Shown here piece by piece: positions 2,237 through 47,560 of a stretch of 64,000 bases of DNA; position 1 is the first letter of the stretch, and every line of letters begins with the position of its first letter. The notes under the pieces are model-generated. The model did not search any database, was not told where the DNA came from, and was given only the letters and a program-made list of their open reading frames with translations. The position numbers and the translations under genes were made by a program. The stretch is from Takakia lepidozioides (taxonomy: Eukaryota > Plantae > Bryophyta): the NCBI GenBank assembly GCA_030704615.1, contig CM060732.1, positions 82,274,001 to 82,338,000 on the forward strand, written 5' to 3'.

Positions 2237-2788
2237 AACATTTGAATCTTTGGTTGTCCAGATGAGCAGCATGGTGCTGGAGGGAGCACATCCCATGTAC
2301 GGATGGAGCAATTACAGACAGGATGGGAGAGATTAAAGCACATTGATGGCGGTATATGATTCCACATTGAAATAGTGGACACGTGGTACTAACACCCTTC
2401 AGGACTACGTCTTCATGGTCATGGAAGCTCAGTCCACTTTTGCAATGTGGAATCACACACCGGCATCGATGAAGCGCCATCGAAAGATCTTGTAAGATAG
2501 GTCTGCTGCATCTGAAATCACCATGTGAATCCTTGGTGGTTCAGATGAACATCATGGTGCTGGAGGAGCACCTTCCATCGCAGGAAACATGGAGGGTAGC
2601 AGCGATGAATCTGAACCCCTCATTTGAGTGAGTTTGCCGGATGAACGGCATCTATTACACCGCCGTTCCCGCCGAGATGCTATGGAATCATCTCGCATAG
2701 CGCCCTCTTTAGTCGCGATTGCTCAGCCCTAACTATTCTCCCCAACCCTACCCTTCTGCTGCTCCTTCTTCTCATTCTTAATAATATA
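2237..2788 (-). repeat. Left arm of a long inverted repeat (partner ~20100-20820); the arm resumes at ~19392-19440 beyond the Helitron
   Basis: Near-identical inverted sequence (both copies give the spurious ORF MALHRCRCVIPHCKSGLSFHDHE..). The right arm has an extra ~150 bp. Confidence 0.9.
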
Positions 2789-5070
2789 CTAGGGTAGCCT
2801 GTGCCGTTGGCCCAAGTGTCCAGTGTCATCTATCTAAGTCTAAGTGTAATCCCCTGTGTATCTAGAGACCCTCCTGTTTGGGAGATCTAGGCCTAGGGTA
2901 GCCTGCGCCATTGGCCCGTGTGTTAAGAATTGAAATCTAGTTCAAGTGCAATCCCCTATGTATCTAGAGACCCTCCTGTTTGGGAGATCTAGGCCTAGGG
3001 TAGCGCAAATCTAAGTCCAAGTGCAATCCCCTATATATATTCAAGTAGCGTCTCCTATGTCAAGGCCATGTGTGAAGAATTGAAATCTAAGCCCAAGTGC
3101 AATCAATATATGAATTAAGACGTTTTGTTTTGTTTTGTTTTGTCACGTTGAGATGTCCCCAACCGCAAGGCCCCAGGTGCTTGGTACCGTTGGAAAGCCC
3201 TTGACGAGGAGGGGTGCACGGGCTTGGTCTCACGATTTTTGGACCTATGGTGTGGGCGATACGGAATTCCAAGTACTTTTGGCGCCGGAAATTCACAAAA
3301 AATAGCAAAAATGGCTTAGATAGGCCTCAACATAGGAGATGCACATGGGAGATGTCAAAGTTGGAGGCATAGGAGATTGCGCTTGGGCTTAGATGACATT
3401 GGACACTTGGGCCAACGGCGCAGGCTATCCTATCAATACATGAAGCGAGACGTTTGTTTTGTTTTGTTTTGTAGCGTCGTTGAGATCTCCCAAACCGCGG
3501 CCCCAACGCAGGTGCTTGGTGCCGTTGGAAAGCCCTCGATGAGGAGGGGTGCACCGACTTGGTCTCATGATTTTTGGACAAGCGGTAAGGAAGATGTGGA
3601 ATTCCAAGTGCTTTGGGTCGCTGGAAATTCACAAAAAATAGCAAAAATGGCAAAGTGGGCAATCCTGGACAATGGTTGGAGCCTCGAGGGGAGAGATATC
3701 AAGGGAAAGGTCTCCGGTTCAAATCTGGTCGTAGGCTCTCTGAAAAAAAAACAAATGATTAGATAAGGGATTGCACTTGGACACTTGGGCCTGCACATGG
3801 GAGATGCACTTGGATACTTGAATAGAAGATTGCACTTGGGCTTAGATTTCAATTCTTCACACATGGGCCAACGGCATAGGCTACACTAGAGGTCACATTT
3901 GGGCCTCGACATAGGAGACCGGCCATGGATACATAAGAAATTGGGCTTAGGTTACAATTCTTCACACATGGGCCTTGACATAGGAGATGTTACTTGAATA
4001 CATAGGGGATTGCACTTGGACTTAGATTTCAATTCTTAACAGATGGGCCAATGGCGCAGGCTACCCTAGGCCTAGATCTCCCAAACATGAGGGTCTCTGA
4101 ATACATAGGGTACAGGCTATCTTAGAGGTTGCAATTAGGCCTCGACATAGGAGACATAGGAGACGCACTGGGATACATAGAAGATCTTACACTTGGACTT
4201 AGATGACACTTGACACTTGGGCCCACGGTACATGCTACCCTAGAGGTCGCATTTGGGCCTCGACATAGGAGACACACTTGGATACAAATAGGAGACGTTT
4301 GGGCCAATGACACATGCTATCCTAGATCTCCCAAACATGGCTACTCAACACCATCCATTCACCGAACACGGACACGGGGGTGCGGGAGGGCGGAGCTCCG
4401 CTCTCCCGCCGCCAACCTCAGCTAAATCCCGTAGTCATGACTAATTTTTAGGGGTATGCCATCTTCTCGGTTTTACAGTCTCATTTTCTTCAACTTTTAG
4501 CAATGCCGCTACTCTAACCCTTACTTTCTTTCTAGCTACGGCAGCCGCCATGGCGCGAGTTTCAGCTCGTCGCGTTGCTGTGCAGCTGCCTTGCTGCTCT
4601 TCTCCCCTCTACCTGCCCAACAAGATAACCTCCTTTCAAAGCTCCGCTTAAGCTATCTTTCCATAGTTTTATCATGTTGTTTTCTTATCGTCTTGTTTTC
4701 AATGGCTGTTCACAACCGGATGTCCACCCACCTGCATGTTCAAGCCGCGTCCATGGAGTTCTCACAGGGCATCGTCTCAGCTTGGCAACGCATGACTAAA
4801 CATCCCGCCCTGTTGCGGCGAGTTCAAATGATTCCACCGTGCAGCGTTTTAATGTTATTGATGCTTCCTTGTCGACACTCTCCTCTCTCTGTCAAGCAGC
4901 ACAGCACTGCGGAAGGCACCATTTCCAGCAGCTGGCCTCTCAACCAGTATGCCAAAGTGGGAGTATAAACGATGCACGTCAAGTGTTCAACAATATGACT
5001 AGGGCTCCAGACCCTGGTCTGCTACTTGAGCTGAAGAAGCCAGCCCGGCGATTTCGTCATTCTTCGCACT

Positions 5071-8000
5071 GTGTTAGGTGTACAGATTGCATATCCTCAT
5101 TCGCAGCTACACTTTCCAGGGCTGCTTTTTACCTTTATGTTTTTCTCATGGCAAGTGGTACGAGCTGGCACAGCCTGGGTTTGCAACACCCTCTCTACTT
5201 CACACACCTCTCACTCAAGCAAGGATCGTGCCAAGAAGATGATCGACATTTATCAGCAAGGTGGGAGAAAGATTGCCTTCGTGACTACGAACAAAGCTCA
5301 ACTCACTGCAACGCCCTTTAATAGCCACTTCAGGTTGTTGCTAGGTGCTACCCTCTACGTTCTCTCCTGGATATGTTGTGCACACTGTACACAACATGAG
5401 AACCATACCAAGATCGTCCTCCAGCAGCCCGCCATCATGCAAGTGCCCTGGAACGAGTGCAACCTTACTATTTCTATTCTTCTCAATGCGGAGGGTCTGG
5501 ACACCTTCGACGATGCGAGATGCGTTGACAAGAATTGGGTAGCTAACACTATACTCCCGAATGCTAGCGCTAAGAGATATGCTGCAGCCACAGATCGTAT
5601 TGGCTTTGGAGCAGCCCAATTACTGCTGTTGGCCCCCCATGACACGGTGCTCAAGCCAAGATACCCTTGCCTTTCTCGCTTCCCAAATGTGATGAGTAAG
5701 CCCAAGCATTCCAGGCCGGCAAATGTGTTTTGTTTCATACCTGCTCAAGCCCATTGCAACTTCCTCATGATGGGGAAGCCGCTCAAATGTTTCAGTGGAG
5801 GTAGCTATTCGAGGCGGAGGGATCAGTTGTACCTGTGCCTAAGCTTGGAGGTTGTTGGCGGCTGGAGTTATAGCTGCAACAATTCCAAAAGCCCTACCTT
5901 TGTAATTTGTAACTTCCAAGACCGACATCTGCCAAGACGAATCCAGAAGATGGAGTGCGGCTGGGTTGCAGCACCTGCCCGAGACAAAGATTCGATACCA
6001 GCAAACACAGACTTATCTTTTGATGATGGCGCTCAGGTATCCCCCTCAGGCCCAGCTAATGCTCTGGCTGCTCAGTTACATGTTCATACCCACTCTACCG
6101 TCAACCTTCTTCCAAGATTCAACGGTATGCGATTCCACCTGCTTGCTAAAACTCACTTTGTTCTTCCCAGAACCCGGGCCAGTGTATTTTGTTACCCCGC
6201 TCTTCATGGCCTTGATGATTATAGCATCTTAAGCAGAGTCCATGCTGCCCATGCTGCCATCATGAGAGCAGAAATTGAGTCAGATATCATGTCGGACACT
6301 GCCTTGGTCGACATGTTTGCCATATGTGGCAGCATAAATGATGCACGTCAAGTGGATGACAATATGCGCCTACAAAATGTGGCCTCATGGAATGTAATGA
6401 TCACAGGATATGCCTGCTATGGGTGTGGTAGGAAGGCTTTGGAGGTCTATGAGCAATTGATAAAGAAAGGGGTTACATTTGCCTACGGTCTCAATGCTTG
6501 GGCCAGCTTGGCAGCTCTCAAAGAGGCCCATACCGATATTAAAAATGCAGGAATTGTGCTAGGTTATGCCCAATACGGCTACGCTGCTACACTGCAAATT
6601 GCGGCAGCAGGAGCTTCTCAAGATGCTATCAAACTGGGAAAATATGTACCCCTGCCTCCACAGCAGAAGCGGCAGGCCAGGCTGAATGGCCATGTCAAAG
6701 CTGAAGTTGTTACACATGTCGTGGAAACCTATGATCAAGTGATGGTGGAAGGGATGAAGCCCAACCACATCGCATCTGTGTGCATTTGCAATGCTTGTGC
6801 AAACCTGGCAGCCCTGGTAAAACTCAAGGTTGTTCATGTTGACATCATCAAAGCTGGAGCTGTACCAAATGTCATTCTGAACACTGCCCAGGCAGCTCTG
6901 GAAAAGGGCAAAGAGGCCCATGGCGACATCGTCAGAGCTGGAATTGTACCGACTGTTATTCTAAAGTATACCCTAGTGGTCACGTATGCAAAATATGAGG
7001 AGGCACAGGGAGTGTTTGACACTACGGCTGAACGGGATGTCGTGTCTTGGAATGTGACCCTTATAGGGTATGCGCAACAGGGACGTGATATGGAGGCTTT
7101 GGAGACCTATGATCAAATGTTGGGGGAAGGGGTGAAACCTGACCACAACACGTTTATGTGCATTTACAATACGTGTGCAAGCATGGCAGCTCTGGAAAAG
7201 GGTAAAGAGGTCCATGGCGACATTTTCAGAACTAGAATTGTACCAAAGGTCACTCTGAACAGTACCCTTGTGGCCATGTATGTAAAATGTAGGTGCATTG
7301 ATGATGAAAAGGGAGTGTTCAACAGACTGGAGACTGCCCCTGCAGATATGTATGCCAAATGTGAGAGCATGAAGGATGCATGTCAAGCTACAGCTGCCAA
7401 CAGTGTCACCCCGGTGTTGCGGCAACGGGCACCACTCTTGCCTGCAGATGTGCAGCTGAACCCACCCGCACCACTCTGTGGACTGACCTGTACCTGCCCT
7501 GCAACCCTCAGAAAGGGCGAAGAGGTCCATGACGGTGTCATCCTAGCTCAAAAGACACCGAACATCAGTCTGGAGACTGCCCTGGCTGACAGGTTTGCCA
7601 AATATGGGAGTGTGCAAAGCTGGCTGCCACAGCAAAGGGTGCACGGGCTTGTTAACGATCACCCATGTATGGCTACCAACCACCATCTTCAGCTGCCAGC
7701 CTTCAGAAGCAGTGGCACTGTCAGGGGCTGTTCTCATCCACCAGCCGCTGCACCAAACCAGCCAGCCAGTCCGCCAAAGTCCTCAATCTTATGGCAGTTT
7801 CACACAATCAGCAGGCCCCTACCCACCACTTCCCTTCTACCCTCATCTAACTCACCTCCAGCTGATGTAGCTCATCAGACTGAAAATCCCGACACTCCAC
7901 CATGCAGCAAGTCAGCACACTTACTGGAACTCTATTTATCTCTCAAGCAGCGCCGCATTGTGGGTCAGCTCAACTACCAAGATAGCGATGAGCTTGTGGT

Positions 8001-11000
8001 ACTGTGGAACTATGCCAAGGCTGCAGATAAGTGGGCAGCTCCTGCAGGTGGTGCTGTAGTTGTTCCAAATGTCACTCTACACACTGCCCTGGCAGATCTG
8101 GGAAAGGGCAAAGTGGTCCATGGCGACATCTTCAGAGCTGGAATTGTACCAACTGTCACTCTGAACAATACCATGGTGGACATGTACACAAAATGTGGGT
8201 GCATCGAGGATGCAAAGGGAGTGTTTGACACTATGGCTGAACGAGATATGATGTCATGGAACGCGATGCTTGCAGGTTCTGTTGTAGCTGTACCTAATGT
8301 CATTCTGCACACTGCCCTGGCACATCTGGAAAAGGGCAAAGAGGCCCAAGGCGACATCTCCAGAGCTGAAACTGTACCAACTATCATCCTGAACAATATC
8401 CTGGTGGACATGTATGCAAAATGTTTTGATGTATCTGTACCAAATGCCATTCTGCACACTGCCCCGGCAGATCTGGATAAGGGCAACGAGGTCCATGGCG
8501 ACATCTTCAGAGCTGGAATTGTACCAGCTGTCACTTTGAACAATACCCTGGTGGACATGTATGCAAAATATGGGCGCATCGAGGATGCAAAGGAAGTGTT
8601 TGACACTATGGTTGAACGAGACTTGGTGGTGTGGAATGCGCTGCCTGCAGGCATTGCTGTAGTTGTACCAAATGTCACTGTGCACATTGCATTGGCAGAT
8701 CTGGAAAAGGGCAAAGAGGTCCATGGCGACATCTTCAAAGCTGGAATTGTACCAACTGTCATTCTGAACAATGCCCTGGTGGACATGTCTGCAAAATGTG
8801 AGTGCATCGAGGATGCAAAGGGCGTGTTTGACACCCTGGCTGAACGAGATGGGGGGTCGTGGAATGCGATGCTTGTAGGTTTTGCATGGCAGGGACGTGG
8901 TATGGAGGCTTTGCCCAGCACCGCTCCTACCTACCCCACCACCTTGGCGTCCTCCCATAAACAGCAAATGAATTTCCCGCTACCCCAGCGTCCTCTGACT
9001 TACAGGGAACCCTCTCACCTCATATCATCTTCGTGGTCGCTCCCTTCTTTCTTTCTGGTCAACTGTCCTCTGAATCCATATCCAATGAGTTCCCTCCATG
9101 ATTTGCAGTTGTTGTGCTATGGACTACTCACTAATCACATGTGGCGTTCCAACCTCCTGCAGGCACAATTGCATAGAATGAGCATTCCTGAGTATTTAAC
9201 TCGAGGAAAGTACAACTCTCAAGCAGGCTATTTTCCAAGCGTGGACCACTCAGCACTCTTGGTCTCCTCTCCCCAAGCTACTTGGGTACACTGGCTCTCT
9301 CGATTCCAAACAATTTTACACACTTGTTACTATCCCCACACAATTGTACACAATGATTTTTACTCCATGCTCCTACTCAATTCTCATAAATGTTATTTCT
9401 CAAATGACTGCCACTCAATACACTACCACTCGCTTTTTGATATTCGGAGCTACTGGCTACCTCAGGAAAATGCTACCTCAGAAAAATGCTACCTTTGGAA
9501 AATGCTACCTTTGGAAAATGCTACCTTTGGAAATTGCTACCTTGGGAAAATGCTACCTTTGGGGAAAGATTACCTTCGGAAAATGTTACCTCGGGAAAAT
9601 GCTACCTCACTCTATTGCTATCCATACTATTTCCAAACAATTCTACACCATGATCTTTACCCCCTGTTCTCACTCAAAACAATTCTACACCATGATCTTT
9701 ACCCCCTGTTCTCACTCAAAACAATTCTACACCATGATCTTCACTCTCTGTTCTCATTCAAAACAATTCGACACCGTGATCTTCACTCTCTGTTCTCATA
9801 CAATGACATTTACAAAATCCATTACCATCACTATGGTACTCATCTCCTTTCGGAGGCATATCATCCATCTTCTATCAATTATATCCTATCACAAATCCCA
9901 CGGTACCAGAGACTCTCTGTATGTGAAACAATTGGCTCTTACAAAAACCTTCATTACTACTTTCATCCGTGTCCCCCCAAACATACCACCCCCCTTCACA
10001 TCCCCTTTACCCATAACCGCCACCTCACCCAATTACAGGACTTTTCATCCGTGCCACTGCCCGAACTCATTCATCCATGGATGTCGTCCACTTATCCTCT
10101 TTCCCCCACTCTAGTTAATTATATACTCTCTACCCACCATACACCCATATTCAATTTTTATCCCCATCATGAGAGCTCATGTACAACAAACCTCCTTCAT
10201 GATCCCCAGACAAACCCACACACTAATCCACACGCAATACCTTCCCCCCCACACACAAATGCAACTAGCTCCACTAGTACCCACTATGCTAATACCAACT
10301 CTACCCCCCTCATACACTTTCTCCACAACTACCCCCCACGCACCCCCACCCCTCACCCCCTCAAAATCCAACTTATAACCCACTACTCACATGGACGATA
10401 TCACCAGAGACCCCTTGCATCCAAACACTCCTCTCACCATCCACCATCCCACTTTAAGTCCTATCTACTTGCCTATGAAACACTTACACTACTTCATTGC
10501 GGCGACATTCACCCAAACCCAGGCCCCTATACCATCACTAGCATCATCAACAAGCTTCCAAAAGATCATAAAGACAGATATAAATTATATTTCCAAACAG
10601 ACACTGTTACACTCGTGCCTGCATATCATCACCTTAGTGATCACTTCTCTCCCTTTCTCCCTAACCCTCCTACCAATAACCGTAAACCCACGCACCCAAT
10701 TGTCACCTTTGGGATCCCTACCTGCGAACACCCATCCCTAGTCACTGCCACCCATAAACTTAGCACATACCCCCCACAACACCTACTACTCTCACTAATC
10801 GTTGTCATCTCTCCAATCCCCTCAATATGCAATGACTACTTTAGAACCCAACCAGACATACACATACGTTTGCTACTACAACAACTGCATGAGTTACCCA
10901 CACTACCTCACAGATACTTAGCACCCCCACACTACCTACACAATCTCCACGAATCCCTTGACCTACTACAAGCCAAGCCCGGAGTAGTTCACAAGATTCT

Positions 11001-12783
11001 TGGCGAACACCTAGTGCACCCAACTGCTATTATACTCGAGCTAGAGACTCTCACCAACAAATTCCCATTCATTTCCAAAAATATTCTCACTGCAACTCTC
11101 CACGCCAAGACAAACATCCCTGGATATCAACCCCCTCCCATGATACCGCCACCAATCATCTCATCTTGCTTGCCCAGCCACATCAATGACCCACCTCCAA
11201 CACCCCTTAGATCCAACAGTCCCCCACACGCCCCCTTCTCCCAGCAAGCACACGCACTCAACATACTCTCCTGGAATGTAGGGTCACTTGCTACCAGCAT
11301 TCAAAGCCTTATCCATCTAACGGACTCTACACCTCCGCATATCATTCTATTACAAGAAACTAAACTCAACACACATGGCCCTAACAACTCCTACATCAAC
11401 AATCTCCTTCCAGCCTACTATTTGCTATATGGCAGTTCCTTCACAGCCACACAATGCCTACTTAGACGCTCCGCGCCATATCATCCCATTCGGGGCAGAG
11501 TGGCTTTTGGTATCCTTCGCACACATCACTCCCCTAGTACCACGGTCAAAATACCTGTTGCTCTCTCCCTCCGATCACACCTTCAAATCATCAAACTACA
11601 CCTCCCAGCTATCCCTCCCATTATCTTTATCCACTTGTACATGCCCTCACATGCCGAAGATCTCCCCTTGATCCATAATATCCTATTTACCATCTCTAAC
11701 ACACTCACACAATTCTCCAACCAATCCCAGCACTACATCCTAGCAGGCGATTTCAACAGGGACATTGCCCTCATAGGCCACACATACAATGGTGTTCACA
11801 AACCTCCATCCCCCGTTGACCATGAATGGGCAAAATTCACTCACTCACACTGCCTCCATTATATACCGGTCGATCACCATTACTCCAGACAAGGTGGACT
11901 TAACTACTCATCCCTCAATCTTCTTGATGGTTTCTACTTCAAGACACAAAATGACATCCCCTCATATCTCAACAGCCATGTACACATTAATAGTTTATGC
12001 AATTCAGACCATTATCCCGTCTCAGTCACCATCCCAGCATCCATCATCCCCTTTCGACCTATCCCACCTATACATGTTCCACCGCCGCAATCTAGAATCT
12101 TATCCCCATTTCCCCACAATAACATAATCGCCTTTCTAAAACACTCCCAGCCAACATTCTTACACCTCATGCTAAGACTCTCCGATATACTCTCCAAAGC
12201 AAACCTCGTGCAGTCCCCTGACAAAGCATGGAACGACGCCGAGACCATACTCACGACTTCAATGCAAGAAATGACCAAAAGTGTGATTGCCACCTGCTCT
12301 GCCCCCCCTGAAATCCCACAAACTGCACGCTCAAAACAAAATGGTGGCTACCTTACCCGTACTCAAAAACGTATATGGACATCACATCTTAACACCTACC
12401 ACACGATCAGGCGTGCCCTTGCTATTATACCCACCACTACCCCCATTCACCAGAGGAACAACTGGACATCGGATCCACGGATCACTTGCCTAAATACCTT
12501 AACAACGTGTCAAGCACTAATGTCACCACCTGCCAATCCCTATTCCAAAATGGACAACTGCTCTCTCCAAAGTTGGCAGATATGCCAAAAAAGCCGCTTA
12601 CAATATTACCAAACAACCACCGATGCCGTCCAACTAATAGGAAACATCTACACAAACAACACTACTGAATACTTTGGCACATACTATGGCTCCACCCCGC
12701 CTATCCCCATCCTTCGTGGAACTATCCAAGGTGACACCTTAAGCCCCTACCTATTCATTATCTTCCTAGAACCCCTACTTTGA
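5071..12783 (+). CDS. 2570-codon ORF: host-fragment/PPR mosaic, low-complexity linker, 2A-like motif, APE endonuclease, then part of the RT after an apparent frameshift and deletion (~12540-12620)
   Basis: PPR motifs (TALVDMFAICGSINDARQV; VVSWNVTLIGYAQQGRDMEALETYDQMLGEGVKPDHNTFMCIYNTCASMAALEKGKEVH) at ~6240-8910. APE motifs LNILSWNVGSL, ILLQETK, ILAGDFN, LLDGFY, SDHYPV at ~11260-12020. RT motif RGTIQGDTLSPYLFIIFLEPLL. First in-frame ATG at 5137. Confidence 0.8.
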   Translation: MLGVQIAYPHSQLHFPGLLFTFMFFSWQVVRAGTAWVCNTLSTSHTSHSSKDRAKKMIDIYQQGGRKIAFVTTNKAQLTATPFNSHFRLLLGATLYVLSWICCAHCTQHENHTKIVLQQPAIMQVPWNECNLTISILLNAEGLDTFDDARCVDKNWVANTILPNASAKRYAAATDRIGFGAAQLLLLAPHDTVLKPRYPCLSRFPNVMSKPKHSRPANVFCFIPAQAHCNFLMMGKPLKCFSGGSYSRRRDQLYLCLSLEVVGGWSYSCNNSKSPTFVICNFQDRHLPRRIQKMECGWVAAPARDKDSIPANTDLSFDDGAQVSPSGPANALAAQLHVHTHSTVNLLPRFNGMRFHLLAKTHFVLPRTRASVFCYPALHGLDDYSILSRVHAAHAAIMRAEIESDIMSDTALVDMFAICGSINDARQVDDNMRLQNVASWNVMITGYACYGCGRKALEVYEQLIKKGVTFAYGLNAWASLAALKEAHTDIKNAGIVLGYAQYGYAATLQIAAAGASQDAIKLGKYVPLPPQQKRQARLNGHVKAEVVTHVVETYDQVMVEGMKPNHIASVCICNACANLAALVKLKVVHVDIIKAGAVPNVILNTAQAALEKGKEAHGDIVRAGIVPTVILKYTLVVTYAKYEEAQGVFDTTAERDVVSWNVTLIGYAQQGRDMEALETYDQMLGEGVKPDHNTFMCIYNTCASMAALEKGKEVHGDIFRTRIVPKVTLNSTLVAMYVKCRCIDDEKGVFNRLETAPADMYAKCESMKDACQATAANSVTPVLRQRAPLLPADVQLNPPAPLCGLTCTCPATLRKGEEVHDGVILAQKTPNISLETALADRFAKYGSVQSWLPQQRVHGLVNDHPCMATNHHLQLPAFRSSGTVRGCSHPPAAAPNQPASPPKSSILWQFHTISRPLPTTSLLPSSNSPPADVAHQTENPDTPPCSKSAHLLELYLSLKQRRIVGQLNYQDSDELVVLWNYAKAADKWAAPAGGAVVVPNVTLHTALADLGKGKVVHGDIFRAGIVPTVTLNNTMVDMYTKCGCIEDAKGVFDTMAERDMMSWNAMLAGSVVAVPNVILHTALAHLEKGKEAQGDISRAETVPTIILNNILVDMYAKCFDVSVPNAILHTAPADLDKGNEVHGDIFRAGIVPAVTLNNTLVDMYAKYGRIEDAKEVFDTMVERDLVVWNALPAGIAVVVPNVTVHIALADLEKGKEVHGDIFKAGIVPTVILNNALVDMSAKCECIEDAKGVFDTLAERDGGSWNAMLVGFAWQGRGMEALPSTAPTYPTTLASSHKQQMNFPLPQRPLTYREPSHLISSSWSLPSFFLVNCPLNPYPMSSLHDLQLLCYGLLTNHMWRSNLLQAQLHRMSIPEYLTRGKYNSQAGYFPSVDHSALLVSSPQATWVHWLSRFQTILHTCYYPHTIVHNDFYSMLLLNSHKCYFSNDCHSIHYHSLFDIRSYWLPQENATSEKCYLWKMLPLENATFGNCYLGKMLPLGKDYLRKMLPRENATSLYCYPYYFQTILHHDLYPLFSLKTILHHDLYPLFSLKTILHHDLHSLFSFKTIRHRDLHSLFSYNDIYKIHYHHYGTHLLSEAYHPSSINYILSQIPRYQRLSVCETIGSYKNLHYYFHPCPPKHTTPLHIPFTHNRHLTQLQDFSSVPLPELIHPWMSSTYPLSPTLVNYILSTHHTPIFNFYPHHESSCTTNLLHDPQTNPHTNPHAIPSPPHTNATSSTSTHYANTNSTPLIHFLHNYPPRTPTPHPLKIQLITHYSHGRYHQRPLASKHSSHHPPSHFKSYLLAYETLTLLHCGDIHPNPGPYTITSIINKLPKDHKDRYKLYFQTDTVTLVPAYHHLSDHFSPFLPNPPTNNRKPTHPIVTFGIPTCEHPSLVTATHKLSTYPPQHLLLSLIVVISPIPSICNDYFRTQPDIHIRLLLQQLHELPTLPHRYLAPPHYLHNLHESLDLLQAKPGVVHKILGEHLVHPTAIILELETLTNKFPFISKNILTATLHAKTNIPGYQPPPMIPPPIISSCLPSHINDPPPTPLRSNSPPHAPFSQQAHALNILSWNVGSLATSIQSLIHLTDSTPPHIILLQETKLNTHGPNNSYINNLLPAYYLLYGSSFTATQCLLRRSAPYHPIRGRVAFGILRTHHSPSTTVKIPVALSLRSHLQIIKLHLPAIPPIIFIHLYMPSHAEDLPLIHNILFTISNTLTQFSNQSQHYILAGDFNRDIALIGHTYNGVHKPPSPVDHEWAKFTHSHCLHYIPVDHHYSRQGGLNYSSLNLLDGFYFKTQNDIPSYLNSHVHINSLCNSDHYPVSVTIPASIIPFRPIPPIHVPPPQSRILSPFPHNNIIAFLKHSQPTFLHLMLRLSDILSKANLVQSPDKAWNDAETILTTSMQEMTKSVIATCSAPPEIPQTARSKQNGGYLTRTQKRIWTSHLNTYHTIRRALAIIPTTTPIHQRNNWTSDPRITCLNTLTTCQALMSPPANPYSKMDNCSLQSWQICQKSRLQYYQTTTDAVQLIGNIYTNNTTEYFGTYYGSTPPIPILRGTIQGDTLSPYLFIIFLEPLL
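8055..8880 (+). repeat. About 4 tandem, internally deleted PPR (L-S type) units
   Basis: Repeated VPNV.LHTALADLEKGKEVHGDIFRAGIVPTV.LNN.LVDMYAKC.CIEDAKGVFDTMAERD..SWNA, all sharing the same deletion junction (TALA|DLEKG). Confidence 0.85.
9456..9609 (+). repeat. ~16-bp minisatellite (GGAAAATGCTACCTTT), about 9 copies, inside the ORF
   Basis: Directly visible; translation cycles through ENATS / KCYL / KMLP. Confidence 0.9.
9635..9800 (+). repeat. 42-bp in-frame tandem repeat, about 4 copies (KTILHHDLYPLFSL)
   Basis: aaacaattctacaccatgatctttaccccctgttctcactca repeated. Confidence 0.9.
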
Positions 12784-15700
12784 TCGCTAGCTCGAGGCAA
12801 GCTTGGATATCACTACAAAACCTCATCAAGTGACATCTCAGCTACAGCATATGCAGACGAGCTAGCCATCCTGGCACATAAACCACAACACCTCAACCGA
12901 CAAGTTAATAAACTACTCTGATTCAACCTATGGTCAGGCATGGAACTCAGCTTACACAAGTGCGCCATCACAGCCGCCACACATCATAGTCGGCTCACCA
13001 AAACTGCCATAGCCTCACATTGTAAACTCTATGTACACTACCAAAACGCACCCTTCCCCTTCCTAGGACCAGACGAGCCATACACTTACTTAGGCATACA
13101 ACTCGTTCCCTCCCTTACTTGGCATATCCAAAAAGAATCTACATCATCCAAACTCATTACCAAAAGTATTGCCTTGCTTAAATCCCTAATTGCCATTCGA
13201 CCAAAACTATCAATCATTCAATGAGTACTACAAACACAAATTCAATATTCGTTCCACACCGCACCCTTCTCCTTATCAGACATCAAAAAACTTGATAAAA
13301 GTATTATCCAGCTAACAAAACGTGTATGTGGTCTACAAACTAGCACCCCCAATGCCCTCACACAAGTACCTACGGACCACTACGGCATTGGTTCAAGCCC
13401 ATTAATCATCTCATATGTTCGAACATTAGGCACCTAATTAAAAGAAGCACTCAATGATCCTGGGCGTCTAGGTATCATTTATCAGGGACTTCTCAAATAC
13501 CTTGCATCTAAATACAATGGCATATACTCATTATCATCCCTGCACCCACAAGCCTGCCTACACTCCCCCACTGCACGCACACTACTCATCCTGTGTCAAA
13601 TGAAAATTAGCATACAAACTGATCTGCCTGACTATCCTAATGCCTCATCACCCTTAGAACGCGCATGGCTTACAAGCCCTTCTCTACCACAGTTTGACAT
13701 TTCTTATCCCAAACAAAAGGTTTCCCTCCTCACATATTTCAAAGAACAACACATCACCACCCTCACCCAACTTACTACCGCCACTGGCCATAGACTTTTA
13801 AAACCTAGCGAATTCACTCTTAAATTCTCTCGAGCCACGACCAAAACCAATTGCTACCTACATCATTTTCGTACCCTCTTCTGCCATCCCTCGACCGCCT
13901 GCACTCTACAATGTGACCTCCCATGTCTCTACTATCCGCATACGGCTCAAGACCTGCTCCCCCAGTACCGTTCTACCCCTACTACCTCCATCTACCAAAC
14001 ACTCCAAACGACATATGCCACCAATACCCAAACAGACATAGAATCTAATTTCTCCTCTCAAGTAACTAACACACAACACCCTGAACCTATCCGCCACTTG
14101 CATACGCCATAATCCCTCACGTGCTCGGCAAGGATCCCACATCCCCCTAACCACCGCACCATCCCCCCCACCTTCACCACAATACGACGACAATAACAAT
14201 GCTTATATCATTGAAGCTATACTAGGAGTTAAAACCCAAACGTCCATTGATGCCTTTGGAGCCACCTGCATTGATACATACTATCACTGTCAATGGGCTG
14301 GGTACTCTTCCGCAGACAACACATGGCAGATAGAAGATGACCTCTTCGGCCGACATGACGATTGCGACCCCGAACACAATCTTGCCCTCCTCACTACCTT
14401 CCATAAACAAACCAACACCAACTATCTAACACACATGCACCAACAACACACCACTCCCGCCCAACCTACAGATAACAGATATATACACCAGCCACTCTAT
14501 GCCCCCAACGTGCACATCTGCATAACTGAATGTAATCCTGACAAAGATGTCAAGCATGATCAACCTCTAATCCACATGGGCCCCCCGCCTTTCCAACATT
14601 TACGCTCAACATGGCCGTTTCATTGGCCTCATCCCCAATACAAGACTAACGTGGCTCTGGGAGAAATACTCTACTACTACCTCATCCCCACAGTCCCTAC
14701 AACCCCCGAAACAAGATTTTGCTACCAAATTATATTGGCTGGTTGATCGCTACCTAAAAGACACTCCCCCCAAGAAACCACGGTCTCTCACTAAATTGGA
14801 AACAACATGTGCGCATCATACTATACCCCAAGATATTCTCTCCTTACTTATCAACACATTCCAGCTTACTCACTCATATTACTCCAACCCATTGACATGT
14901 CCTATGACATTGCCCACATTTTCTAGCCCGCACCATAGAGACTGTATCTTTGGAGCCACTGGTACTGCCACCCACCACACCTGGGAAGGCCGGGGCCTTG
15001 CCCACCCTCCACCTGGTTCTCCTTCTCACGAAGCTCTTCAACGGGCAAAACTTGCTGCGCACTCCTCTCCTACTGCATCCACAATCCTCATCATCGCACA
15101 ACAAAACACTCCTAATATCTCTCACCCTCTTCTACAACTCCCAGAAGGGGTCAATCTACTCGCCACAATTGACCCAAACTAGCTTAAGTATATTCACACC
15201 CCTCCTCTTCCCAAATATCTCAAACGGAAGGAACCCACCCTAACCCTGATTCTACACATCCAAAACCCCCGGCATACAGCCATACCGCCATCTTTCTTTT
15301 CTCAGCTCGAATAATTGCTCACCATCACTCATAAAATAAAGGCCACCATCCATTATCCAACCATCCTCTCCCACACCCATACACCCACCACATTGTCCCG
15401 GATCAAAACCAACAAAGCTTGGAACATTGCGACACCACGCCCTTCTCAGGTCACGCCAACAACACCTCTACCCCCAATCTCTGCAATATATCAACAAAAC
15501 ACTATCCCCAAATATCCACTGGCCAATTCACATTACACTGACGGATCCCTCACCAAACCTAACGCAGGGTATGGAATCTATCACGCCGGCACCAGTGAAG
15601 GCGTTGCCCTCAGGCTCCCTGGCTCTGCCACCATCCTCCGGGCTGAACTCATGGCCATTTATACGCCCTCTCTCTACTTGACACCTCCCCCCCCCCACAC

Positions 15701-16933
15701 TATATTTTCACCGACAACCTTACCTCACTATTCCTCATTCGTAACCACATCTCCAACCCCTCTGCCCATCATCATCACCCCGACCGCAACCTCATTGCCG
15801 CTATTGTCTAGAGGGCCATCTCCCTAGGCCACCTAGTCCATATACTCAAAGTCCGTTCGCATACTGGCATCCATGGTAATGAAGAAGCAGACCTACTCGC
15901 CCAACTCGGCGCCTCCCAACCCATAGTTGAACCCTCGAACGACCCTATTCACATCGCCCACACCCATCCTTTCTGGTTCATACACCCCGTTCCAGACCCA
16001 CGTGCACCCAGACCAGTCCGAAACCTCCTGACCACTCTGACCAGAGAAGCAAATAAACAAGCGGCAGCCTCCATCAGCCATACCAAAGTACACATCCAAA
16101 AATGGACTCAATCCAATGTACTACACCATAAACTCTCCAATCATTTCTGGCTAACCAAAACCACTACCGACGCACAAATCCGACAAACACTCAAATTCCG
16201 ATATGCCCAATACATGGGCCACCAGCGCAAACACATCTTCTGGTCACATCTGTTCCCATCCCCATACTGCCCGTTATATGCAACCACCCACCAAGCTCGT
16301 GACACTTGGCCACATCTCCTCAGCCAATGTACACACCCAGTTATACATGGCTTACATATCACGCGTCATAACCAGGCAGTCTGGCACCTCCACAAGCTCT
16401 TTCTAAAACGTGTTGAAACCCATTGGTTCTCGCTCATGAATGCAGGCACCTACCAGGGACGGCCACCCGACCACACAGTACCACCGTGGCTACTACCATG
16501 CATATGTACCCAAACACCATGCTCATGCCCCGCTCGACTTTGCCCGGACATACTCCTCGTCCAAGGTCTACCTATCAACACTTTACCCCCCACCTCACCA
16601 TCCCCACAACTCACCATCCATTTCATTGAATTCACATTTTGCCACGATCGTTATCCAAATGATTCAATCTTAGAAAAACGGCAAAAATATGCCCCGCTTA
16701 TCTTTGCACTCCGAAGGCGTGGCTGGAAAACCGGCCCATTAACTGTCATCACAGCCGGCACTCGAGGTGGCATTCATAACACCAATATCACGGACATACA
16801 CGATAACTTCCAAATTCCCATTCTTCCCATCCACAAATGTTTCAAAGAAATCCATCTCACAACACTCCGTTCACTCACAGCTATTATCACCAACAAACGC
16901 CAACTGGAATCCGGCACTTCAAACGCACCTTAG
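12784..16933 (+). pseudogene. Decayed 3' half of the retroelement ORF: RT core/thumb, chromodomain, MTase-like segment, RNase H, CCHC-like knuckle, restriction-like endonuclease
   Basis: AYADELAI (12847, YADD>YADE) and YTYLGI. Chromodomain YIIEAILG..YYHCQWAGYSSADNTWQIEDDL (~14204-14343). RNase H YTDGS..AELMAI..IFTDN..KVRSHTGIHGNEEADLLA (~15533-15900). CPLY..DTWPHLLSQC..RHNQAV, then PDILLV..IEFTFC..EKRQKY (16268-16790). Multiple stops and frameshifts. Confidence 0.88.
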
Positions 16934-19444
16934 GTCCCCCGGGATACCCCTGGGTACCCAGGGGTACCCTCGCCCCCTCTATTCTTAGCGGTCACCTGGT
17001 GTCCTCCTGGACACTTTTTGTTATAGGGCCCACCCCCGAAAGGGGGCAGTAGCCGCAAGGCGAAGTGGCTCTTAGTTACGCCGGCCTCGGCCGGAGTCTT
17101 CTCTCTCTCTCTCCCAAACATGCGGGTCTCTAGATACATAGGGGATTGCACACCGGGCACTGTGGAATTTTTTTTACTTAGATGACATTGGACACTTGGG
17201 CCAACGGCAAAAGCTACCCTAGAGGTTGCATTTGGGCCTCGACATAGGAGACCCACTCTGATACATAGGGGATTGCACACTGGGCTTAGATGGGCCTCGA
17301 CATAGGAGATGCACATGGGAGATGTCAAAGTTGGAGGCATAGGAGATTGCACTTAGGCTTAGATGACATTGGACACTTGGGCCAACGGCGCAGGCTATCC
17401 TATCAATACATGAAGCGAGACGTTTGTTTTGTTTTGTTTTGTAGCGTCGTTGAGATCTCCCAAACCGCGGCCCCAACGCGGGTGCTTGGTGCCGTTGGAA
17501 AGCCCTCGATGAGGAGGGGTGCACCGACTTGGTCTCATGATTTTTGGACAAGCGGTAAGGAAGATGTGGAATTCCAAGTGCTTTGGGTCGCTGGAAATTC
17601 ACAAAAAATAGCAAAAATGGCAAAGTGGGCATTCCTGGGACAATGGTTGGAGCCTCGAGGGGAGAGATATCAAGGGAAAGGTCTCCGGTTCAAATCTGGT
17701 CGTAGGCTTTGTGGAAAAAAAACTTACTTAGATGATATTGGGCCATTGGAAATTTGGGAAAAATAGCAAAGTGGTCAATCCCGGGAGAATGGTTGGAGCC
17801 TTGACGGGAGAGACAACAAGGGAGAGGTCTCCGGTTCAAATCTGGTTATAGGCTATGTGGGAAAAAAAATGATTAGATATGGTTAAATCATTAGACTTAG
17901 ATGACTTAGATGACAGTGGACACTTGGGCCAATGGCAGAGGCTACCCTAGAGGTCGCACTTCGGCCTCACTTAGAGATCTTGCACTTGGCCTTTAGATGA
18001 CACTGGGCCAAGGGCACAAGCTATCCTAGAGGTCGCATTTGAGCCTCGACATAGGAGACACAATTGTATATATAGGGGATAGCACTTGGAGATATCAAGG
18101 GAAATGAGACAAATCTGGTCGTAGGCTTTGTGGAACGAAAATGATTGGATATGGCTTGCTTCATATATTGATGCACTTGGACTTAGATGACATTGGACAC
18201 TTGGGCCAACGACACAGGCTATCCTATCAATATATGAAGCGAGACGTTTGTTTTGTTTTGTTTTGTTTGTTTTATTTGTAGCGTCGCTGAGATCTCCCAA
18301 ACCGCGGGGCCCTAGCCCCGGTGCTTGGCGCCATTGGAAAGCCCTCGATGAGGAGGGGTGCACCGGCTTGGTCCCATGGTTTTTGGACCCGCGGTGTGGG
18401 AGATATTGAATTTCAAGTACTTTTGGTCTCTAGAAATTCGGGAAAAATAGCAAAGTGGGCTTTCCTGGAGCAGTGATTGGGCCTTCACGTGGGAGATTTG
18501 GAATTTCAAGTACTTTTGGTCGCTGGAAATTCGCAAAAACTAGCAAAGTGGATATATCAATATACGAAGCCTTAAGAGGGGAGATTGCAAAAATAGCAAA
18601 GTGGGCTTTGGGATTGCACTTGGACTTTGGTGACATTGGACATGACTGGAGGTCGCACTTGGGCCTCTACATGGGAGACGTACATGGATACATAGGAGAT
18701 TGCAATTTGGGCTTAGATTTCAATTCTTCACACATGGGCCAATGACACACGCTACCCTAGATCTCCCAAATAGTGGGGTCTTTGGATACATAGGGGATTG
18801 CACTTGGACATAGAAGACAATGGAGTACACTTGGGCCAATGGCACAGACTACCCTAGTTTCTTATGTATCCAAGTGGGTCTCCTATTTCGAGGCCCAAGT
18901 GCGACCTCTAGTGTAGCCTATAACGTTGGCCCATGTGTGAAGAATTGAAATCTAAGCCCAAGTGCAACCTTTTATTCATGTATCCAAGTGCATCTCCAAT
19001 GTACAAGCCCAAGTGTCCAATATCATCTAAGTCCAAGTGCAATCCCATATCTGATCATTTTTTATTTTTATTTTTTTCAGAGAGCCTATGACCAGATTTG
19101 AACCGGAGACCTTTCCCTTGATATCTCTCCCGTCGAGGCTCCAACCATTGTCCCAGGAATGCCCACTTTGCCATTTTTGCTATTTTTTGTGAATTTCCAG
19201 CGACCAAAAGTACTTGGAATTACGTATCTCCCACACCGCATGTCCAAAAATCATGAGACCAAGCCGGTGCACCCCTCCTCGTCCAGGGCTTTCCAACGGT
19301 ATCAAGCACCAACGCTGGGGGCTTGCGGTTCGGGACATCTCAACGCTACAAAACAAAACAAAACAAACAAACGTCTCGATTCGTATATTGATTCGGAGTT
19401 AAAAGCAATTGAATATTTCTTTCTTTTTTAATGCTTTAAACTGT

Positions 19445-20065
19445 CCCGTAGGAAGATAATAGGAATAATGAACTTAATGGACACATGCAACCTCTGACAT
19501 AATGGTACGCCGATTTTTGGAATGTCAAATCTTCCCCACCCTCTCTTGAGAGTGACATGGAACTGAAGGAGTGTAAACTCCAGTCAGGGTTACACTAGGG
19601 TACAAGGTGAGGTGTGTAATTCCACTTGGAGTTACACGACAAGGTGTGTAACTCCACTCGGGGTTACACGACAAGGTGTGTAACTCCACTCGAGGTTACA
19701 CGACAAGGTGTGTAACTCCACTTGGTGTCACTCACCCTTGGTATCGAAATTTGACTAAGTCCAAATTTGGCCAAGTATAAAATGGACTAATCAGGGTTAC
19801 ATGAGAGATCAGGGTTACACTAATAATCCGGACTAACTAGGGTTACATGATAGACCGGGGTTATACACTACAAGAGCCTCCCATCAAGAGCCGCCTTACC
19901 ATCAGCTTATCCTCTTACCATCACGCTGCCCACCACACCATGAAAACCACTTGGATTCTTAAGTAAACCGAGGGTAAGAGGGATTTGACAGGGCCAGTCA
20001 GAGGAGCCCAGGCTGCAGCGACACGTGTCCATTAAGTTCTTACAGTATTCCTATTGTCTTCCGGG
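19445..20065. mobile_element. Non-autonomous TIR element with internal 32-bp palindromic tandem repeats; related inverted copy at ~48130-48575
   Basis: Imperfect TIRs CCC..GGAAGA(T/C)AATAGGAATA..AACTTAATGGACAC. Unit GACAAGGTGTGTAACTCCACTCGGGGTTACAC about 3.5 times at ~19610-19725. No clear TSD. Confidence 0.7.
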
Positions 20066-20099
20066 AAATATATATATAATTAAATGTGACGCAAAGATC

Positions 20100-20820
20100 C
20101 AAGGCATTGAGAAAGAAAAAAAAAAAGTATTCAATTGCTTATAACTCCCAATATATTATTAAGAATGAGAGGGAGCAGTAGAAGGGTAGGGCTGGGGAGG
20201 ATAGTTAGGGCAGAGCAATCGCGAGATGCGAGATGATTCCACAGCATCTCGGCGGGAACGGCGGTGTAGTAGATGCCGTTCATCCGGCAAACTCACTCAG
20301 ATGAGGGGTTCAGATTCATCACTGCTGTCGAGACTGTTGGGCCTAGCAGCCGTATGAGCTCTCCCTCCTCCTTTGCTTGCAATGCTGATGGCGCAGGAGA
20401 CCAAGGGAGAGCAGCGCGTTGTCTGTTGAATACCTTTTCAGCGAGAGTGCCTCGTGCAGGCAATTGATCTGCGACAACCCTACATGGAAGGTGCTCCTCC
20501 AGCACCATGATGTTCATCTGAACCACCAAGGATTCACATGGTGATTTCAGATGCAGCAGACCTATCTTACAAGATCCTTCGATGGCGCTTCATCGATGCC
20601 GGTGTGTGATTCCACATTGCAAAAGTGGACTGAGCTTCCATGACCATGAAGAAGTCGTCCTGAAGGGTGTTAGTAGCACGTTTCCACTATTTCAATGTGG
20701 AATCATAGACCGCCATCAATGTGACTGCTTCGTGTCTGTGATTGCTCCATCCGTACATGGGATGTGCTCCCTCCAGCACCATGCTGTTCATCTGGACAAC
20801 CAAGGATTCAAATGTTGTTG
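20100..20820 (+). repeat. Right arm of the long inverted repeat
   Basis: Reverse complement of 2237-2788 plus 19392-19440. Confidence 0.9.
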
Positions 20821-44945: not shown

Positions 44946-47560
44946 TCACATGTGACGGCAAAGTTGTGCCCAGGATACCATAGCCCTTTTGGTGGGGTTT
45001 TGGGGGGAGGCACCCCACAAAAAGTTCCTCATCATTGCTTTCAGCTTTGTAATTAGCTTGGAACCCGGAGACCAAACCGAGGCTGGATACCACACTGATG
45101 CGAGTAGTATTTGATTTAGAACTAGAGCCCTGCCTGCAATACATAGCATAGCTGAGCTCCAAAAGGCCAGTTTGTTACGGAGCTTCTGTAAGACAGACTC
45201 AAATCTTTGCTCATCAGTGAGCCCTATCCCAATCTGAAAGCCCAAAAGTGTGTGCGCTGAACCTGGCTGGAGCCATTTAAGACCTACATCTTGTCCCCAA
45301 GGAGGGCCGTGTTGTCTGTAGGATGAAGCAGATAGCTCTGTGAGGAGGCCAACTGATTTGGTCCAATTTATTTTGAGCCCAGAAGCGGAGCAGAAAAATT
45401 GCAGGGCTTGACGAACCCTTTCAATGTTTGTTGGTGCCTCATTGTTCAAAAACAATGTGGTGTCATCAGTATACATTGAGTTCTTAATAGAGGATCCATC
45501 TTGCATTTTTAGGCCCAAAATATCCTGCCTTGAATTGAGGTAGTGGCCTAGGGCATCTGCTGCCATGAGAAAGAGGTAGGGAGACATTGGGCAACCTTGC
45601 CTTACGGACCTGAAAAGCGCAAAGGGCTTTGAAATCACTCCGTTTACCATGACTTTGCTAGAGGCTGAGGAAAGTAGGATATGGATCCATCTGTTGAAAG
45701 CTTCAAGCATTCCCATTCTGACCAAAACTTGATTTAGAAAACTCCAATCAATGTTATCAAAGGCCTTTTCAAAGTCAAGCATGAGTATGGCCATGGGCTG
45801 CTCAGAGCACTTGGCCTTATATATGACTTCATTGACTAATAGAATGTTATCTAGAATCATTCTCCCTTTTAGAAACCCGGATTGCTCTGGTCTGATAACC
45901 CGAGAGAGAATGGGCTGCAGCCTGAGGGCCAAAGCCTGACAATAATTTTATAAGCAGTGTTCAGAAGCGTTATAGGTCTATAATTAGATATCATGCTTCT
46001 ATCACCCTTTTTGAAAATCAAAGTGATGAGACCAATTGAGAGTTGTGAAGGCATGATGCCCTTCGAAAGTATATCTTTAGCCAACTCAACAAAGTCATTC
46101 ACTATGATATGCCAGAGGGCCGTAAAAAACTCAATTGGCATGCCGTCTAACCCTGGCATCTTTCCAGCTTTGAGGGAATGCAAGGCCTCCGCCAGGTCTG
46201 AGTCGGAGAGCGGGGAAGAGAGTTCATCTTTTTCTTTTTCAGAAAGGAGCGAGGGGACACATCACATAATTTCCTGAGAGGCAAACTTAGACTCTTCTGA
46301 GTGCTGCCTCTTAGAGAAGAGGGAGGCAAAGTGTTGCTCAACATAGGCAGCCATCGCTTTAGGGTTGGAGGAGATAGTGGACCCATGAGGGCTAGTGAGG
46401 GAGGAAATGGATGAAGCCATTTGCCTTTGTTTGGCCTTAGCAAAGAAATATTTAGTCATTTTTTCACCTTTTAGAGACCAGTTCACCCCTGCCTTTATAC
46501 GGATAGCGTTTTCCTTCTCATGTCTAAAATTCCAGAGATTGGATTTCGCTCTATTATAGTTCATCAGAGTACATGGTCCTTCATCTTTGTTCTCCAAAAG
46601 TTGTTGGCAAAGATGGAGGCATTTGAGCAAACTCTTCTCTTTTTGGGAGCACGCTAAAGCAAAGGCTTTGGATTGTTACTGCGATCTAATCCTGGTAGCC
46701 TCTAGCTTGGTAAGGAATCTAAGGGTGGCAGACTCAAAATGGTTCCAAGATGAAGACCATATCTGGGCCAGATCATTTACCATTGCCCTAGATTTAAGGA
46801 TAGATGGGTTAAGCTTGAAGTAACCTCTAACCTAGATCCAGGAACAGAAAAGAGAGCGCCAGTCTCTGCATGGTTGAAGTCAGGAAGTAGTGGGCCCATT
46901 GGAATAGGCTGGACCCAAGACACTATACCAGTAATGCAGTAAATTCGATCTAGTCTGGCCATAACCAGATCAGGCGGTGCTCTGCAATTTGTCCAAGAGA
47001 ATCGCAGCTGATTATCTCCAAGGATGGAGATGTCAATAAGACTGACAGAGAGATAGAGGGTCTCCCACGCATTATTCTCGTCGGGGGTGAGGCTGTAACT
47101 GCCAGGATTCAGCCTGTCCATAGTTTTTTCAGTCATATTAAAGTCTCCAGCCATTAGCCATTGGTCAATCTCTGGATGGCTTAAGATCTTGGAATGTAAA
47201 AGGTGCCAAAAAACAATCCCAGCATTGGGAGCATAAACATTTACGAGGCCTATTTTACAGAAGACAAAATTGCGCTCTGCCAATCATCCAATTTCCACTC
47301 CAGAGATATGGTTGGCCAGATTCGGGGACACCAGAATAGATGTGCCACCTCTAGAGTCAGCCACAGTTTTATTCCACCAAGAAAGATTGGCTGGCCACAA
47401 CATATTTCCCAAAGAGGTTATCTTAGAATCATTTAGCTCATGTTCCTGTAGGAAGATAATAGAATTTTCAAACATCACCGATGTAGCCCAACGTTTAATC
47501 TTGGATCTTTTAGGGGTAGAGGCTTCAGAACCTATGCCTCTAATATTCCAGGATCTGATG
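44946..47560 (-). pseudogene. L1-clade LINE ORF2 relic (APE + RT), frameshifted and 3'-truncated
   Basis: IRSWNIRG, FLQEH, VNVYAPN, AGDFN, ARLDRIY; PGLDG, NYRPITLLNTAYKI, QSGFLKGR, LDFEKAFD, VRQGCPMSPYLF, YTDD, spread over about 5 frames. Confidence 0.92.

Follow-up and report, generated by a model that had tools for sequence, protein, structure and literature searches.

The DNA analysed here is a stretch of 64,000 nucleotides from the bryophyte Takakia lepidozioides (assembly GCA_030704615.1, contig CM060732.1, positions 82,274,001 to 82,338,000 of the forward strand), referred to below as the window. It contains an inserted unit of 12,770 bp (4340-17109) with a (TC)n tract at its 3′ end. 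The 3′ part of this unit is a long interspersed nuclear element (LINE), and the 5′ part, which meets it at 8913, is derived from pentatricopeptide repeat (PPR) motifs. The features of the unit are collected in Table 1.

Table 1. Features of the inserted unit and of the target-site duplication (TSD) that encloses it. RT, reverse transcriptase; ORF, open reading frame; UTR, untranslated region.
Feature	Position	Strand	Basis or remark
Left TSD copy (TCTCCCAAACATG)	4327-4339	+	Direct reading; alignment with empty-site paralogues
5′ leader, UTR-like	4340-4701	+	Several upstream ATGs; unlike the LINE 5′ region
N-terminal part of the PPR-derived ORF	4702-5034	+	First in-frame ATG at 4702
Open stretch of 365 codons, not PPR-like	5035-6129	+	No Pfam match, no confident fold
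Degenerate PLS-type PPR array	6130-7639	+	Pfam; blastx, frame 1 only
Open stretch with little PPR likeness	7640-8052	+	Frame 1 the only open frame
Tandem 76-aa PPR units	8053-8913	+	Repeat and unit comparison
LINE 5′ region, pre-2A open frame	8914-10476	+	C-rich; 16-nt and 42-nt tandem repeats
2A-like motif GDIHPNPGP	10501-10527	+	Motif reading against relatives
Conserved post-2A region, ~250 aa	10528-11265	+	Common to L001 and L002; no Pfam match
APE endonuclease domain	11266-12020	+	Pfam Exo_endo_phos; catalytic motifs present
Site of missing RT, ~830 nt (N-terminal motifs)	12427-12621	+	Comparison with L002
RT remnant (GTIQGD, YADE)	12622-14109	+	In-frame stops at 12781, 12919, 13222, 13435
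Chromodomain-like stretch	~14204-14350	+	Reachable via frameshifts only
PCIF1_WW-like stretch (cap adenosine methyltransferase-like)	~14589-15092	+	Reachable via frameshifts only
RNase H remnant	15489-15910	+	Profile match; comparison with L002
Restriction-like endonuclease (RLE) region	16268-16640	+	Motif reading, no profile
3′ UTR with G+C-rich hairpins, then (TC)n tail	16931-17109	+	Direct reading and folding
Right TSD copy (TCTCCCAAACATG)	17110-17122	+	Direct reading; alignment with empty-site paralogues

Three of the 13 bases of the TSD are possibly part of the (TC)n tail, which gives a duplication of 10-13 bp. When the left and right flanks are joined, the alignment reconstitutes a single host repeat unit, and uninterrupted paralogous units, which represent empty sites, are found at three places, ~4077, ~18760 and ~2900 (the last on the minus strand). 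The 13-mer TCTCCCAAACATG also occurs within the intact host unit at 4077. This is no threat to the TSD reading, because what precedes the right-hand copy is the tail of the element, where an intact host unit would have its upstream half. One TSD surrounds the PPR and LINE parts together and there is no separate insertion signature, as is found in LINE chimeric insertions; no TSD belongs to the PPR block alone, and there is none at 8913. An earlier note, made from the letters of the sequence, had described a 13-bp TSD around 12.8 kb and an empty site at about 18760, and had concluded that the PPR block moved as part of the retroelement RNA. Both observations are reproduced here, with two further empty sites, and the conclusion that the block was co-mobilised agrees with the single TSD, the three empty sites, the lack of an insertion signature within the unit and the absence of any PPR remainder downstream. 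No second copy of the element was found by blastn within the window.

Frame 1 has no stop at all from 5035 to 12780, a run of 2,582 codons, while the other two frames have ordinary numbers of stops. The run spans PPR motifs recognised by Pfam, the 2A-like motif and an intact-looking APE domain, and the PPR and APE parts do therefore share one stop-free frame, as the earlier note had claimed. Under a first-order Markov model about 57 stops are expected in 5035-8913 and about 45 in 8914-12780, around 100 overall against none observed, and zero stops were reached in none of 2,000 simulations.

The start of the frame is polymorphic. The open segments of the window are 4501-4965 (frame 1), 4800-5318 (frame 0) and 5035-12780 (frame 1), and a 1-nt gap after 4956 leads to stops at 4966, 4996 and 5032. 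Read evidence was taken from Logan contigs, for which the library type is not on record and which total 33-49 Mb, far below genome size; contig depth was taken neither as copy number nor as expression. In two of the runs, X2 and X6 (in X6 in part of the depth), 4956 is followed by an additional T, which brings back a canonical motif, YAKCGS...DAR..F, at the first S-type PPR motif (about 4945-4995). X2 is also one base short at 5091, so that its two changes, 135 nt apart, cancel each other in frame and link the three open segments, by frame arithmetic on the segments of the window. By the same arithmetic the X2 allele is open from 4501 (first ATG 4702) through 12780. The alleles are 0.5-2% apart.

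The leader of the PPR-derived part shows no similarity to the 5′ region of the LINE, and a Kozak-type GCCGCCATGG at 4550 within it opens a frame of 33 codons only. Downstream of this, Pfam matches PPR (E=1.8e-25) and PPR_2 (E=1.7e-23) in 5071-8910. Comparison by blastx with 120 plant PPR proteins gives matches in frame 1 only, from ~6130 to 8913-8958. The array at 6130-7639 has been built by partial duplications and deletions, all in register, with spacings of 84, 294 and 906 nt. Over the whole tract the spacings are 84, 147, 228, 294, 375 and 906 nt; every one is divisible by 3, which is the pattern expected of in-register recombination among PPR motifs. The tandem units that follow consist of an L motif, an S motif and a stub of the P motif (its first 10 residues), and lie at 8053-8280, 8281-8427 (a short unit of 49 aa), 8428-8655 and 8656-8883, followed by a partial P motif in the middle of which (...GRGMEAL) the array breaks off at 8913.

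As a PPR protein the tract is degenerate. The regular P-L-S triplets of PLS-class editing factors are replaced by 76-aa units, partial duplications and non-PPR stretches. Core PPR residues have been lost within the 76-aa units, each of which lacks most of the P motif, and comparison of the three full units gives a pooled dN/dS (ratio of nonsynonymous to synonymous rates) of ~1, from 73.5 nonsynonymous and 23.5 synonymous differences. No E or DYW domain was found in the tract by Pfam, and the PPR part has no 3′ UTR or poly(A). The stretches 5035-6129 and 7640-8052 have no PPR likeness and no Pfam match (E up to 1), though they are open in frame 1 only, and single-sequence AlphaFold2 models of 5035-6129 and of the pre-2A region 8914-10476 have a mean pLDDT of 34. 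To judge from its sequence, therefore, the PPR tract looks pseudogene-like in its amino acids, yet guarded against stops and frameshifts.

Thousands of contigs from the same organism are 90-95% identical to the PPR-motif parts. The cargo is on this evidence host-derived and fairly recent, and has not come from distant LINE relatives.

The LINE part can be assigned by its domain architecture. The catalytic N, E, D/N (GDFN) and SDH motifs of the APE domain are invariant with the relatives discussed below. Between the RT and RNase H remnants there is a chromodomain-like and a PCIF1_WW-like stretch. In the RLE region a CCHC finger (16268-16330), RHN (16364), PD (16541) and E (16625) can be recognised; these motifs are conserved in the relative L002, to which the region is 38% identical over 367 aa. 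The combination of APE and RLE is like that of the Dualen/RandI clade, to which the LINE would thus appear to be related. About 830 nt of the reverse transcriptase are missing, Pfam finds no RVT_1 match in the window whereas L002 has one, four stops interrupt the remnant, and beyond 14109 the reading frame shifts several times. This copy is therefore not autonomous.

The closest relatives of the LINE are metagenome proteins with 30-38% identity, none of them from this organism. L002 is a 17-kb contig from ENA that has an APE gene and, after it, a protein of 1,542 aa containing RVT_1, PCIF1_WW and RNase_H; since the PCIF1_WW match is common to our element and to this distant relative (within 10961-15589 of L002), it is a feature of the clade. 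Homology with L001 and L002 begins exactly at 2A (10477-10483 of the window) and extends by tblastn to 16912. Within this range, the ~250-aa region after 2A is kept across relatives at 34-37% identity. Ahead of 2A the relatives too have long ORFs that are not conserved. In L002 these lie at 4371-8296 and encode 495 and 813 aa (~1,300 aa) with no known domain, and neither L001 nor L002 has a PPR or Josephin match in its upstream ORFs (Pfam, E up to 1). The first of the two L002 ORFs overlaps the second by 4 nt, in an arrangement of the stop-start type.

The region ahead of 2A has no relatives (8914-10476) among 1.84 billion proteins. An exhaustive HMMER search with the 785 aa that precede APE returned relatives for the post-2A part only, all with E of 1e-13 or weaker. 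No fused relatives, i.e. proteins of 1,420-4,518 aa resembling the LINE part, were found, and scans of metagenomes with a 24-mer from the LINE 5′ end and with the protein spanning the junction gave nothing from this organism. Within the LINE 5′ region, the open frame also contains a 16-nt tandem array (9440-9650, ~10 copies), whose period is not compatible with codons and which is open in all three frames, and a 42-nt tandem array of four copies (9590-9800).

One possibility is that the PPR tract serves the element as an adopted module, that is, as an ORF1p-like RNA-binding protein released at 2A, and that this is a trait of Dualen/RandI elements of the green lineage. The tract does lie ahead of 2A, where ORF1-like functions are expected, PMC3708506 having proposed that what is N-terminal of 2A can substitute for ORF1; an N-terminal PPR has been reported in Dualen/RandI ORF2p of Haematococcus (bioRxiv 10.64898/2026.06.17.732966), and the reading frame has been maintained. 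We nevertheless regard this idea as improbable. The dN/dS of ~1 between units, the loss of core residues and the absence of most of the P motif from each unit do not suggest a working RNA-binding protein. The cargo is of the host PLS type and its nucleotide identity of 90-95% to host copies indicates a recent capture and not descent from algal relatives; nor do L001 and L002 have PPR by Pfam. Furthermore, the 2A-like motif GDIHPNPGP has His in the position of the key Glu, while the relatives carry DIELNPGP and DIEPNPGP. This Glu is a key determinant of the recoding activity of 2A, and elements substituted there were inactive in the study that identified it (PMC3708506).

Given how repetitive the PPR motifs of this genome are, the fusion might be thought an artefact, produced by misassembly at 8913, or else a case of nesting in situ, in which a LINE landed in a resident PPR gene. 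The earlier note had named misassembly as a refutation of its reading, and an insertion signature belonging to the PPR block alone as a sign of a one-off capture. Neither is seen. The junction at 8913 is crossed by contigs of X1 (8877-9287), X2 (8793-9175) and X6 (8793-9030), three runs from three studies, and is hence not a misassembly. Of the 411 positions of the X1 junction contig 4 differ from the window, to which X1 is otherwise identical, and a low-coverage run labelled as plant metagenome, X7, also contains the unique parts. As for nesting, there is no TSD at 8913, and both parts, PPR and LINE, lie between the two TSD copies and within the split host unit. No PPR likeness was found elsewhere in the 64 kb, including downstream of 17122, so that there is no second half of a PPR gene behind the element. 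An artefact or nesting in situ can accordingly be given hardly any credence.

A nested insertion of the PPR block was also considered and was ruled out, since the 5′ part and the 8913 junction have no direct repeat as long as 9 nt in common. The junction coincides with a sharp switch in GC skew (~8910-8913); the LINE side, 8914-17109, is strongly C-rich and 4340-8913 is not.

The decay of the element is uneven. Four stops occur in the 443 codons of the RT remnant, compared with none in the 2,582 codons upstream, and all the unconditional frameshifts lie beyond 14109. A stop would result from about 3-4% of the substitutions in these frames. The four RT stops therefore correspond to ~7% divergence since constraint was lost (lower bound 2%), from which ~18 stops (at least 5) would be expected upstream under neutral drift; none is observed. 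A 5′ ORF that is intact in an element that has lost its RT is the configuration of a half-LINE of the HAL1 type. We prefer to read this as the mark of an RT-less lineage whose 5′ frame, through APE, may have been kept open, rather than of a recombinant RNA with a live 5′ and a dead 3′ portion.

A frame that is preserved while the rest of the element decays could alternatively belong to a domesticated gene, maintained here by the host from 4702 or 5035 to 12780 and encoding the PPR tract together with APE. The length of the open frame and the intact APE motifs are what such a gene would show. However, in the reference allele the frame is interrupted close to where it begins, by a frameshift and three stops; the site is polymorphic, the amino acids of the PPR units drift neutrally, and the locus lies within a repeat array. 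We consider domestication very unlikely.

Another possibility is that the chimera is a one-off: RNA of a dead LINE and a PPR-derived RNA were joined at this insertion by 5′ transduction or template switching, the open frame was inherited, and a PPR-LINE lineage never existed. The inherited frame would then come from a source that was kept open in some other way, for instance an odd live PPR gene or the cargo of another transposon. Chimeras of LINE and cellular RNA are established (PMC13174262, PMC2104539), and an in-frame join has a chance of 1 in 3. The break in composition at 8913, the restriction of homology with relatives to the region from 2A onwards and the single-contig coverage of the non-PPR parts of the cargo are all compatible with this. 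What it does not readily explain is how ~1,290 degenerate PPR codons came to be free of stops and frameshifts, which requires long selection on the frame only; such selection fits life in a translated element ORF better than life in a host gene. In addition, the decay of RT preceded that of the upstream frame. A one-off chimera is thus a possible explanation, but in our view a rather unlikely one.

On the basis of these observations, we favour the explanation that the 5′ part of a host PPR transcript was captured into the pre-2A, or ORF1, position of a non-autonomous LINE lineage, and would put the chances of its being correct at about even. A single event of target-primed reverse transcription would have placed a chimeric RNA of 12.77 kb into the host repeat. 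Its 3′ 8.2 kb would be the Dualen/RandI-like LINE, with pre-2A region, 2A-like motif, conserved region, APE, RT, chromo-like and PCIF1-like stretches, RNase H, RLE, a structured 3′ UTR and the (TC)n tail. The N-terminal motifs of RT are deleted and stops and frameshifts follow after 12780, for which reason copying would have been in trans, with RT presumably supplied by autonomous relatives. The 5′ 4.57 kb would stem from a host transcript of the PLS class of PPR, of which it represents the 5′ portion, with leader, start, N-terminus and PLS motifs up to the middle of a P motif.

The in-frame joining could have come about by 5′ transduction, from a source LINE that lay in sense orientation within a PPR gene and was transcribed from the promoter of that gene, or by template switching, in which RT would pass from the 5′ end of the LINE onto a PPR RNA. 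The single TSD, the lack of a TSD of the PPR block and a 5′ end that resembles a transcript start fit both routes. Once in the ORF1 position, the PPR tract would have drifted in its amino acids, with stops and frameshifts kept out, the RT having decayed earlier. The result would be a non-autonomous half-LINE sublineage which passed through more than one cycle of replication, and which was selected only for an open 5′ frame through APE. The PPR part would in that case be translated as a leader but would not work as a PPR protein. The long unconserved ORFs ahead of 2A in the relatives, and the precedent of PPR ahead of 2A in Haematococcus, speak for this explanation as well. The present insertion is probably young, to judge from the small differences between alleles and from the frame still open from 4501 in X2, with decay just beginning. 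Of the reading put forward in the earlier note, therefore, co-mobilisation of PPR and LINE sequence holds good, whereas a family trait or an adopted RNA-binding module finds little support, given that the relatives resemble the element from 2A only and the tract is degenerate.

Several points weigh against the explanation that we favour. The non-PPR parts of the cargo are represented by one contig per run, so that no copy with at least 90% identity is visible there, and the differences in the X1 junction contig may reflect the other haplotype rather than a second copy. The uneven decay, on which the proposal of more than one cycle is based, could also stem from recombination between a live and a dead RNA. 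Selection on the frame as far as APE, in an element that lacks RT, would act through a hypothetical mechanism. The 16-nt array at 9440-9650, although inside the open frame, looks more like UTR than coding sequence; several ATGs lie upstream of the first in-frame ATG at 4702; and the 2A-like motif is without its key Glu.

The surroundings of the insertion are themselves repetitive. The host repeat is a large foldback-like structure with inverted arms at 2237-4340 and 18760-20816, whose complementarity reaches 98% (2339-2578 against 20484-20723). Two of its tandem units, 3302-3751 and 17272-17722, form a direct repeat and are 97-99% alike. These were considered as a long TSD of the Dualen type and rejected, as they do not abut the insert and fit host tandem units of ~1.19 kb. 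At 1558-1719 and 19598-19725 there are a 24-nt tandem repeat on the palindrome CAATTCAATTGAATTG and a 32-nt tandem repeat. Another LINE-like stretch, with APE/RT-type blastx matches, lies on the minus strand at 45357-46186; at the nucleotide level it does not resemble the element at 4340-17109 and hence belongs to a different family.

The wider interest of the element lies in the history of PPR genes. Families of PLS-PPR editing factors are hugely expanded in some land plants, and retroposition is held responsible. We know of no carrier of this retroposition that has been identified so far. Here a PPR 5′ part has demonstrably travelled in LINE RNA, in frame with the polyprotein, in a genome with very many PPR copies that closely resemble one another. 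If the junction and the cargo are common to independent insertions, a carrier of PPR spread would be seen directly. A further suggestion is that Dualen-like LINEs of this plant habitually carry host PLS-PPR sequence in the pre-2A position and retrotranspose it, using PPR as an RNA-binding leader and at the same time multiplying and reshuffling PPR modules. This seems to us doubtful; if it were true, it would explain in concrete terms how retroposition expanded the editing-factor families, and these LINEs would be a counterpart of the PPR-bearing Dualen elements of Haematococcus. Should the fusion instead be a one-off, it would be an ordinary LINE chimera of unusual size.

It is useful to compare the element with known systems. 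HAL1, the half-L1 of Bao and Jurka 2010, is said to keep a bona fide ORF1 and to have lost ORF2. Like HAL1, our element is a non-autonomous LINE derivative in which the 5′ ORF is still open after the loss of RT; unlike HAL1, it retains APE, and its 5′ ORF is largely host-derived and drifting. The Dualen/RandI LINEs of Chlamydomonas, reportedly described by Kojima and Fujiwara 2005, share with it APE, RT, RNase H and a C-terminal endonuclease of the CCHC/PD type, and differ from it in the chromo-like and PCIF1-like inserts, the 2A-like motif and the 4.6-kb PPR-derived 5′ part that are present here. Dualen LINEs are active in Chlamydomonas (PMC9977147). The TSD of 13 bp contrasts with that of Dualen-4b_cRei, for which the median is ~900 bp among duplications longer than 50 bp (PMC9977147).

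L1 is known to recombine with diverse RNAs (PMC13174262), and chimeras are also formed by MGL of Magnaporthe (PMC2104539). As in such chimeric retrocopies and in 5′ transductions, one TSD is present and a part from cellular RNA, in sense orientation, is fused to the 5′ end of the LINE. The cellular part is here 4.6 kb long, however, it is in frame with the LINE ORF, and it shows signs of long selection on the frame only. Motifs of the 2A type ahead of APE have been described in L1Tc, Ingi, CR1, Rex1, L2 and Crack (PMC3708506). In most of the described 2A-LINEs they are preceded by tens to ~100 codons, as against ~1,930 in the longest allele here, and our motif differs from those of APE-type LINEs bearing 2A in having His for the key Glu.

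The closest parallel is found in the green alga Haematococcus lacustris, where ORF2p of Dualen/RandI elements carries 2A-like peptides and, in one case, an N-terminal PPR domain, in two cases a Josephin DUB domain and in two cases both (bioRxiv 10.64898/2026.06.17.732966). These domains are mentioned there in one sentence, from predicted structures. The statement in the earlier note that it knew of no described LINE of this architecture is therefore out of date. The two systems agree in clade, as judged by architecture, in a 2A-like motif ahead of APE, and in a PPR-type domain at the N-terminus in the same frame. They differ in that no Josephin domain was found here by Pfam, that this copy is defective in RT, and that the tract is of the host PLS (editing-factor) type, rearranged and degenerate, in a land plant. 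If the arrangement is shared by independent insertions, it would be the second independent case, after the green alga, of PPR ahead of 2A in Dualen/RandI. What is new here is the land-plant host, the host-derived PLS cargo, the proof of co-mobilisation given by the TSD, and a constraint on the frame only that is visible in the sequence.

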